The notes: a model not told the origin generated them from the sequence alone. Counted from the stretch's first letter, positions 27,755 through 28,788 are shown. The stretch is DNA of 64,000 nucleotides from Orbicella franksi (GCA_964199315.1 OZ116706.1:28086001-28150000), one strand, 5' to 3'. Numbers and translations: made by a program.

Positions 27755-28788
27755 GAGTAATTTTTCATGTATAGTATTAGTCCTATGTAAAAACTATACC
27801 GATGCATGTTTGGGAACACCAGCATTTTTACTCTTTTGTATAGTATTTTTTAAGTTATTATCTTCTTAAGTCTTCGGTATCTTTAAGGTAGTCCGTTACA
27901 TAACCCTTATTGACTTCCCTGAGCTTCTTGTCTTAAACATTAATATTTTGAAAATATTAAAAAAACAAACAAACAATATAGCCGCCTTTTAAAAATCTCT
28001 TTTAATGGGCATCTTCGAATTTCTTTATTTTGCCTTTGTATCAAAACTATATTGATGATGCAAAACCTTTCAAACAAATATGCGTTTACTAAACGTGAAA
28101 ATAAGCATGAGTAGCACACATGTTCACACGAATGAGTTTGCTCTCGTTTGTATCAAGATGTACTTTGAATCAGACGAAAACACCATGTTGACCACTGCCA
28201 ATGATCGTTTTTGTAAAATCTCTACAGGAAATAGTTTTTATTCCGGGCGTCGGGCATGCAGTTAATTTGTTCCTTATCTGCGATGGAGCCTTGTGCAGTG
28301 ATCTAGGTAAGGCCTGGTTTTCACTAGACACTACAAGCTACAAGCTAAAGCACTACAAGCTACAAGCTGAAGCTTAAGCATAACAGTAGTGAGGACTCCC
28401 ACAACACAAGCATAAGCGCAAGCACAGGCAGAATAAAACTTTTTGTTCTTCTTCTGTTTGTGCTGCGTGATGCTTGTGTCAAATGAGAAGGCGCCGCTGT
28501 AAGCATTAGCATAAGCATCGTCCTTCATTTTCATTTTTTTCATGATACCTAGGAGGTATGGAACCGGAAGTGAGGCAATCATCCATTTTAAGCATGCGTA
28601 CGTTTATGCTTTTGCTGATGCTTATGCTTGCGTCGTAGGGAAAACCAGGCTTGAAGGACTGACTGAGGGTAGGAGAAATCTGGAGATGATGACAGTCAGT
28701 CATTTCACACGGCTAAAATGACCCATTACGGTATTACCTGGAGACTCTGTCGTTTTTGTTTTTTATTCCTGGAGAGGATCACACCCAT
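18850..28788 (-). CDS. NWD1-like: NACHT and WD40 domain protein, paralogue A (~1759 aa): MGxxxS/polybasic N-terminus, acidic linker, DUF4062-like domain, NACHT, helical domains, WD40 propellers, acidic tail
   Basis: Nine exons with consistent phase: 28738-28788 (MGVILSRNKKQKRQSLQ), 26529-26958, 26004-26206, 25598-25931, 24310-25034 (Walker A GESGCGKT), 23294-23509 (Walker B VVLVLDSLDQL), 21435-23132, 20106-20930, 18850-19647. Total 5280 nt, open frame. DUF4062-type motifs IFTSSTFT, VVDMRWG and TTELCMRE are present. Confidence 0.9.
23690..23815 (+). mobile_element. tRNA-derived SINE fragment (intronic)
   Basis: A-box-like tagctcggtagttagagc and B-box-like gggttggaatccc, followed by non-tRNA sequence; the acceptor stem is not intact. 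Confidence 0.55.
27181..27781. repeat. Unclassified interspersed repeat with an internal hairpin
   Basis: Internal inverted repeat taggtaatcgtacggtttttctcgttcaatttggaattaatttgcac ... gtgcaaattaattccaaactgaacgagaaaaaccatatgattaccta at ~27361-27482; outer boundaries are approximate. Confidence 0.4.
28311..28651. mobile_element. PIF/Harbinger-type MITE in the first coding intron of paralogue A
   Basis: taa|ggcctggttttcac ... gggaaaaccaggct|tga, with internal aagcata/tatgctt subrepeats. Confidence 0.6.

Follow-up and report, generated by a model that had tools for sequence, protein, structure and literature searches.

N-terminal acyl anchors and the NWD family

Myristoylated proteins bind membranes stably with the help of a second signal, for which there are two classical and interchangeable forms, a cluster of basic residues and a palmitoylatable Cys. 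Src and MARCKS carry 'myristate plus basic' anchors, and the start of paralogue A, one of the coral genes described here, resembles them in its Met-Gly start, Ser6, a basic position 7, five K/R in the next eight residues and a disordered tail. Lck/Fyn-type starts resemble the 'myristate plus Cys' version present in NWD1-like relatives. The cargo of the coral protein differs from that of Src and MARCKS, being a 1,700-residue STAND ATPase with a TIR-like domain and not a kinase or an actin-binding protein, and behind the predicted coral anchor comes a long tail that is very acidic.

Among plant immune receptors, the coiled-coil NLRs RPS5, PML5, L3/L5 and SUMM2 are held at the membrane before activation by N-terminal myristoylation and/or S-acylation, and mutants of the G2A type lose function (PMC11467418, PMC13043302). 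The coral gene is similar to these N-acylated NLRs as a STAND receptor of the immune type with an N-terminal acyl anchor, which in the coral is predicted. In contrast to plant CNLs of the RPS5 type, with coiled-coil, NB-ARC and LRR, the coral protein combines a predicted DUF4062/TIR-like domain with NACHT and WD40 domains, and the N-terminal domains of the two are without homology. The acylated plant NLRs mostly use Gly and Cys, whereas the coral genes possess Gly and a basic cluster. The relation, if the predicted anchor operates, is an analogy of mechanism and not family membership.

Vertebrate NWD1 and NWD2 share domain order and family with the coral genes (Pfam HTH_NWD1, NACHT, NWD2 C-terminal propeller and, as predicted from the orthologues, DUF4062). 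DUF4062/TeTIR, which is the N-terminal domain of NWD proteins, has been identified as a TIR-like NADase domain of STAND proteins and is active in human TEP1 (bioRxiv 10.64898/2026.05.01.722283, 10.64898/2026.09.21.753143; 2026 preprints). Mouse Nwd1 is located at the cytoplasmic face of the ER, where it is targeted by its WD40 part and not by its N-terminus (PMC11897295), and human NWD1 is described as N-terminally truncated in the TIR-like domain (bioRxiv 10.64898/2026.09.21.753143, 10.64898/2026.05.01.722283). Unlike paralogue A, the sampled NWD2-like proteins begin at the domain (MDDRT...IVRIFTSS), without tail or MG. A preliminary description of this DNA had stated that N-acylation is not known in animal NWD proteins, and our literature searches agree: no report of acylated NWD proteins was found in the full-text literature (NWD1 with myristoyl; NACHT/WD40/coral with myristoylation), and acylation is not mentioned in the NWD/DUF4062 papers bioRxiv 10.64898/2026.09.21.753143, bioRxiv 10.64898/2026.05.01.722283 and PMC11897295.

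Three tandem NWD1-like genes in the window

The window, which is the whole stretch of 64,000 nucleotides of Orbicella franksi DNA analysed here (GCA_964199315.1 OZ116706.1:28086001-28150000), harbours three tandem genes on the minus strand, namely paralogue A (Table 1), paralogue B (about 33302-41640) and paralogue C (about 45231-51861). Pfam analysis of their exons detected NACHT, NPHP3_N, HTH_NWD1, many WD40 propeller families and Beta-prop_NWD2_C. In paralogue A, NACHT was matched at 4.1e-07 (30.4 bits, cut-off 26.7) and HTH_NWD1 at 4.9e-18 (65.7 bits, cut-off 27), and the beta-propeller matches of paralogue C include Beta-prop_NWD2_C. The search with tblastn showed that paralogue A is collinear with a Montipora protein (P0043) over residues 33-1778, reaching the end of that protein. 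In BLAST the best matches came from scleractinian corals: paralogue A shares 81% identity with a protein from Stylophora and 78% with one from Montipora, and paralogue B shares 84% with one from Oculina. The nearest annotated relatives of the three genes are cnidarian proteins named 'NACHT domain- and WD repeat-containing protein 1-like' or 'qui-1-like'. Paralogue A belongs to the NWD1-like STAND family.

The paralogues differ in their introns. Intron 1 is present in A and B and absent from C. B (33302-36598) and C (45231-48584) each encode the WD40 half in one exon of about 3.3 kb, and in A (18850-23150) two introns of about 450-500 nt interrupt it, with the alignment to the Montipora orthologue still contiguous; this is intron gain or loss between tandem paralogues. 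For paralogue B, a contig of the JGI 3300008042 metatranscriptome (L001), 99.4% identical to the window and spanning 31858-37772, is a spliced mRNA of the same species that proves the junctions 37658/37197 and 36983/36610. It extends to 31858, about 1.4 kb past the stop of paralogue B (33302-33304), consistent with a long 3' UTR.

Table 1. Position of gene features in the window, counted from its first letter.
Feature	Positions	Strand	Description
Whole paralogue A	18850..28820	-	N-terminal tail, predicted DUF4062, NACHT, NWD1 winged helix, WD40 propellers; about 8 coding exons
Untranslated leader, same exon as the ATG of paralogue A	28789..28820	-	after acceptor-like T11-GCAG site
First coding exon of paralogue A, coding part	28738..28788	-	MGVILSRNKKQKRQSLQ; 51 nt, 17 codons; phase 0 end at CAG/GT
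Intron 1 of paralogue A	26959..28737	-	GT at 28737-28736, AG at 26960-26959
Second coding exon of paralogue A	26529..26958	-	acidic, Ser-rich disordered linker into DUF4062/TIR-like start (IVRIFTSSTFT); ends ACAG/GTAAAT, phase 1
First coding exon of paralogue B	41584..41640	-	MGIAISRKKRWTPKVEQNE, then gtattt; phase 0 join to exon 2 at 40376
First coding exon of paralogue C	51408..51861	-	MGIIVSRKRRRE into acidic linker and DUF4062 start (IVRIFTSSTFT), without intron

First coding exon of paralogue A

From 28788 to 28738 on the minus strand, the codons of the first exon are ATG GGT GTG ATC CTC TCC AGG AAT AAA AAA CAA AAA CGA CAG AGT CTC CAG, followed by gtaata. The second coding exon begins directly after a strong acceptor, ttcttattttcag, with ACT CTT CAC, encoding TLH. 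Seventeen whole codons ending at CAG/GT and TLH from 26958 give a join in phase 0. This is the 51-nt exon of the preliminary description, which had it end at CAG/gtaata and join 26958 in phase 0, and both the sequence and the orthologous proteins confirm it. The same description had reported the exon as absent from the ORF track. The ORF of exon 1 counts 20 codons from the ATG and 23 from an upstream GTG, and appears only when ORFs of at least 20 aa are listed; its length thus agrees with that report and explains why the exon is missing from an ordinary ORF track.

An in-frame TAG is present five codons 5' of the ATG. The acceptor-like site before the leader ends at 28821, 32 nt 5' of the ATG, and stops in all three frames were found between the two. 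Because the leader is closed in all three frames, no coding sequence can enter the exon from upstream, and the N-terminus of paralogue A is therefore Met-Gly if the exon is in the mRNA. The Kozak context of the ATG is GCAATGG, with a purine at -3 and G at +4. The leader acceptor (TTGCAG/ATTACTT) is kept in two genomic contigs from a related species (L003/L004), and this conservation suggests that a further non-coding exon may be located upstream of the leader.

Two other elements were observed near the exon. An upstream ORF of five codons (MFSWW-stop; 28808-28791, minus strand) ends 2 nt before the main ATG; its own ATG is ACG in L003/L004, and the uORF is not conserved. Inside intron 1, about 122 nt (27362-27483) match their own reverse complement at about 88%, forming a palindromic, possibly MITE-like element.

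Predicted lipid anchor and acidic tail

The consensus of N-myristoyltransferase (NMT) is G-{EDRKHPFYW}-x-x-[STAGCN]-{P} (PROSITE PS00008). Residues G2 V3 I4 L5 S6 R7 of paralogue A fit this consensus, with Arg at position 7 and not the preferred Lys. The peptide MGVILSRNKKQKRQSLQ has Gly2, Ser6 and five K/R within positions 7-14 (R7, K9, K10, K12 and R13), and no D/E is found in positions 7-16. The earlier claim that Gly2 and Ser6 with the following basic residues form the NMT consensus is borne out by G2, V3, S6, R7, the five K/R and the lack of an acidic residue in positions 7-14. In NMT substrates, residues 2-7 lie as an extended strand in the pockets of the enzyme, the basic position 7 makes a salt bridge and Ser6 is favoured (PMC7048800). 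A signal peptide or a transmembrane start was rejected, as only three hydrophobic residues follow Gly2.

Behind the predicted anchor of paralogue A, Asp, Glu and Ser are abundant in a tail of about 140 residues, and the net charge is about -21 over 160 residues. In the AlphaFold model of the Stylophora orthologue, residues 1-155 have pLDDT below 50 and no secondary structure, and the fold starts with a helix and a strand around IVRIFTSS, where Pfam DUF4062 begins. This predicted disorder of residues 1-155 would leave the N-terminus accessible. No Pfam match to DUF4062 was obtained with single exons of the window at E <= 0.01. The orthologues P0043, P0034 and P0022 match PF13271 above the cut-off, starting at IVRIFTSSTFT, and exon 2 of paralogue A is 78-80% identical to P0043 and P0034 (tblastn) over a stretch that includes DUF4062.

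The sequence of events predicted for paralogue A is as follows. The initiator Met would be removed co-translationally and NMT would add myristate to Gly2, V3, S6 and R7 fitting its binding pockets. Myristate and the adjoining five Lys/Arg would then keep the N-terminus attached to a membrane at its cytoplasmic face, and the disordered acidic tail of about 140 residues would act as a flexible leash that tethers the TIR-like/NACHT/WD40 body to it. The acidic membranes named in the preliminary description would be a candidate target. Against a simple reading of this kind, the acidic tail might cover the basic patch or disfavour contact with acidic lipid. It is speculation that the leash has such a masking effect, or that phosphorylation of Ser in or near the patch provides an electrostatic switch. 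Myristoylation and membrane anchoring of paralogue A are well supported as predictions and probable. The complete explanation, which joins a true coding start, a myristate-plus-basic anchor and a tethered body, we likewise regard as probably correct.

Met-Gly starts in annotated relatives

Starts of the same kind are present in the NCBI models of the A/B orthologues from Stylophora (P0034, MGVLLSKKQTKTRQSFQ), Montipora (MGIILSRKKNKS) and Oculina (P0030, MGSAVSRKKKRK), the N-terminus of P0034 being near-identical to that of paralogue A. Other cnidarian relatives start with MGIILSKRRRRRR (Oculina, P0022), MGAIVSRKRRT (Acropora), MGSASSKRKKK (Nematostella) and MGVLISKKKSAKK (Rhopilema). Paralogues B and C also have five K/R each in their basic clusters. 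The anchor-type start had been described as a trait of paralogue A; it was found there, and it is not special to that gene, being present in A, B and C and in many NWD1-like proteins of cnidarians, hemichordates and molluscs.

A tree of the region after the NACHT domain was built, by FastTree only and with no root inferred, from 113 full-length relatives together with A, B and C. The tree divides into 52 NWD1-like and 64 NWD2-like rows at a branch with 99% local support, and A, B and C belong to a clade with 100% local support within the NWD1-like half. The MG motif is present in 34 of the 52 NWD1-like rows, at the annotated start or no more than 30 residues from it, and in all ten proteins of the anthozoan clade to which A, B and C belong. 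Motifs found within 30 residues of the annotated start, such as MILSVAESVICRA-MGCGSSK, probably reflect mis-set starts. No convincing MG case was found among the 64 rows of the NWD2-like half; a single row has an MG motif in its first 30 residues, which was judged to be a chance match. The arthropod majority of this half starts directly at the domain (MDDRTVD...KIVRIFTSS), without tail and without MG.

Of the 29 long proteins with an MG start, 24 have Ser at position 6 and four have Gly or Thr there, and 16 have Lys or Arg at position 7. Twenty-five full-length models (at least 1,500 aa) begin with the consensus, and 23 of them possess a second signal. In 16 of these, from hemichordates, molluscs and some cnidarians, it is Cys next to Gly (MGCGxS), and in the other seven, from cnidarians, it is a basic cluster. 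The remaining two models have neither. Across phyla, no positions of the whole N-terminal tail are better conserved than Gly2 and Ser6. This switch within the family between myristate plus basic and myristate plus Cys argues for lipid anchoring more strongly than the motif of one gene would.

The anchor may be an old NWD1-like trait, absent from the NWD2-like branch, in which a basic cluster and a palmitoylatable Cys can replace each other as the second signal. In its widest form, which we put forward tentatively and with slightly more doubt than confidence, an N-terminal lipid anchor of either kind would be ancestral and conserved in the NWD1-like branch of animal TIR-like-NADase STAND proteins; these would be membrane-resident sensors or executioners, the animal counterpart of acylated plant NLRs, and the anchor would have been lost or replaced in NWD2 and vertebrate NWD1. 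Since the tree is unrooted, 'ancestral' is a reading and not a result.

The same N-termini could also be read with the exon as a real start and the protein free of lipid, the basic run being a nuclear-import signal or a patch for protein or nucleic-acid binding and the MG-x-x-x-S left unused by NMT. The basic runs KKQKR and RKRRR do match the classical nuclear-import signal, KKQKR of A and KRRRR of C fitting the consensus K-K/R-x-K/R; motif-based predictions of myristoylation have false positives, and the acidic tail speaks against simple binding to acidic lipid. Nevertheless, this reading is unlikely, as it is opposed by the cross-phylum conservation of Gly2 and Ser6 and by the relatives without a basic run, whose Cys3 (MGCGxS) is sensible only as an alternative lipid second signal. 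The basic run is hard to explain as a nuclear-import signal in a family where it is exchanged for Cys.

Annotated starts vary among the relatives. In six mollusc and other NWD1-like proteins (P0153, P0183, P0190, P0211, P0117 and P0124) the annotated start lies 5-15 residues before an internal MGC/MGS motif and has probably been mis-set. Close relatives from Haliotis start with MGCGPS (P0111) or with a non-MG sequence (P0108, P0113, P0118), which hints at alternative first exons. For paralogue A itself, such a situation would mean that the MG exon is one of several alternative first exons and that only a fraction of the protein is anchored, depending on tissue or condition, other isoforms starting from a different exon or from a Met before DUF4062. 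Besides the Haliotis proteins, this possibility draws on an internal Met in exon 2 just before the domain (GDMDFHYPEK), on a Dendronephthya model (P0079) that starts without MG, and on the acceptor before the ATG, which implies one or more upstream exons and promoter complexity. We hold it to be improbable, given that the anthozoan-clade proteins, A, B and C included, all start with MG and that no competing conserved ATG exon was seen. It is compatible with the lipid-anchor explanation and does not exclude it.

Conservation of the exon and chance expectation of the motif

The first 21 nt of the exon matched four contigs among the JGI metagenomes and metatranscriptomes, all of them unspliced and genomic. 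Two belong to the same species (99.5-99.9% identical) and two to a related species (L003/L004), the latter being about 80% identical to the window in non-coding DNA and about 90% in exon 2. L003/L004 keep the ATG of paralogue A, the upstream acceptor, the GT donor and the acceptor TTATTTTCAG at 26958, and the quality of the alignment jumps exactly at 26958. Within exon 1 they show one synonymous change, one Leu to Phe change and one in-frame deletion of 3 nt. Their indels measure 8 nt in the intron just behind exon 1 and 3 nt in exons 1 and 2. No transcript of the species across 28738/26958 was found, the four JGI matches being genomic and the sole spliced contig, that of paralogue B, being without its 5' end. 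When the translated exon 2 was searched against proteins, most matches were prokaryote-style ORF calls on genomic exon 2 whose starts are artefactual, and only one protein (P0229) was informative.

P0229 is encoded by a coral scaffold of a Tara metagenome (L006) and reads MGVLLSKKKNKERHGFQ-VTEDDD..., an open frame that continues unbroken from the MG start through the acidic exon. At L006:1644-1700 the former donor CAG-GTAACG is translated as Gln-Val-Thr and the frame goes on into the acidic region; intron 1 was lost in this coral or never gained there. In paralogue C, the MG start and the acidic region are likewise uninterrupted by an intron, and such an N-terminus therefore belongs to the protein. 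Together, paralogue C and P0229 prove the frame of the join between exon 1 and exon 2. An intronless contig of 5.6 kb from an mRNA assembly (L007, Logan) has an in-frame stop nine codons before MGSVVGKKKKK.

Paralogue C also has an in-frame ATG seven codons upstream (51882-51880, minus strand; MIKLEGS-MG...), with no in-frame stop in the 90 nt upstream. If this ATG is in the mRNA and used, the Gly would be buried and paralogue C would escape myristoylation.

Both strands of the 64 kb were scanned for M-G-{EDRKHPFYW}-x-x-[ST], requiring that 16 codons be open and that residues 7-14 carry a net charge of +4 or more. Exactly three matches were obtained, at 28788, 41640 and 51861, all on the minus strand and one at the 5' end of each paralogue. 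In 200 first-order Markov simulations the mean number of matches was 0.06 and the maximum was one; three were never reached. The MG-plus-basic starts are not due to chance.

That the 17 codons lie outside the gene and are open by chance, in an intron or upstream region, is effectively refuted by the comparative data and extremely improbable, despite the shortness of the ORF, the lack of RNA support from this species and the conservation, at about 80%, of the surrounding non-coding DNA in the related species, since the motif occurs in all three paralogues, paralogue C and L006 have the MG start and the next exon joined without a break, indels are in frame and splice sites kept in L003/L004, and orthologous annotated proteins and an mRNA contig begin with an MG start. 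The stretch 28738-28788 is very probably a real exon of paralogue A, and comparison of the sequences identifies it as the predicted true start of the coding sequence of this tandem NWD1-like STAND gene.

Significance for NWD1-like proteins

Public protein databases already list the MG N-termini, and the novelty lies in how they are read and not in the sequence. First exons of 17 codons are easily missed or mis-set in annotation, and several mollusc models start a few residues early, hiding the Gly. Such gene starts can be corrected with the help of the N-terminal MG motif.

The predicted anchor is of a known kind, on a protein family for which the literature searched does not discuss such anchors. 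If invertebrate NWD1-like proteins do carry a conserved lipid anchor, these large STAND machines would already be at a membrane before they are activated, like the acylated plant NLRs, and the anchor would bear on the question of what NWD proteins sense and where they act.
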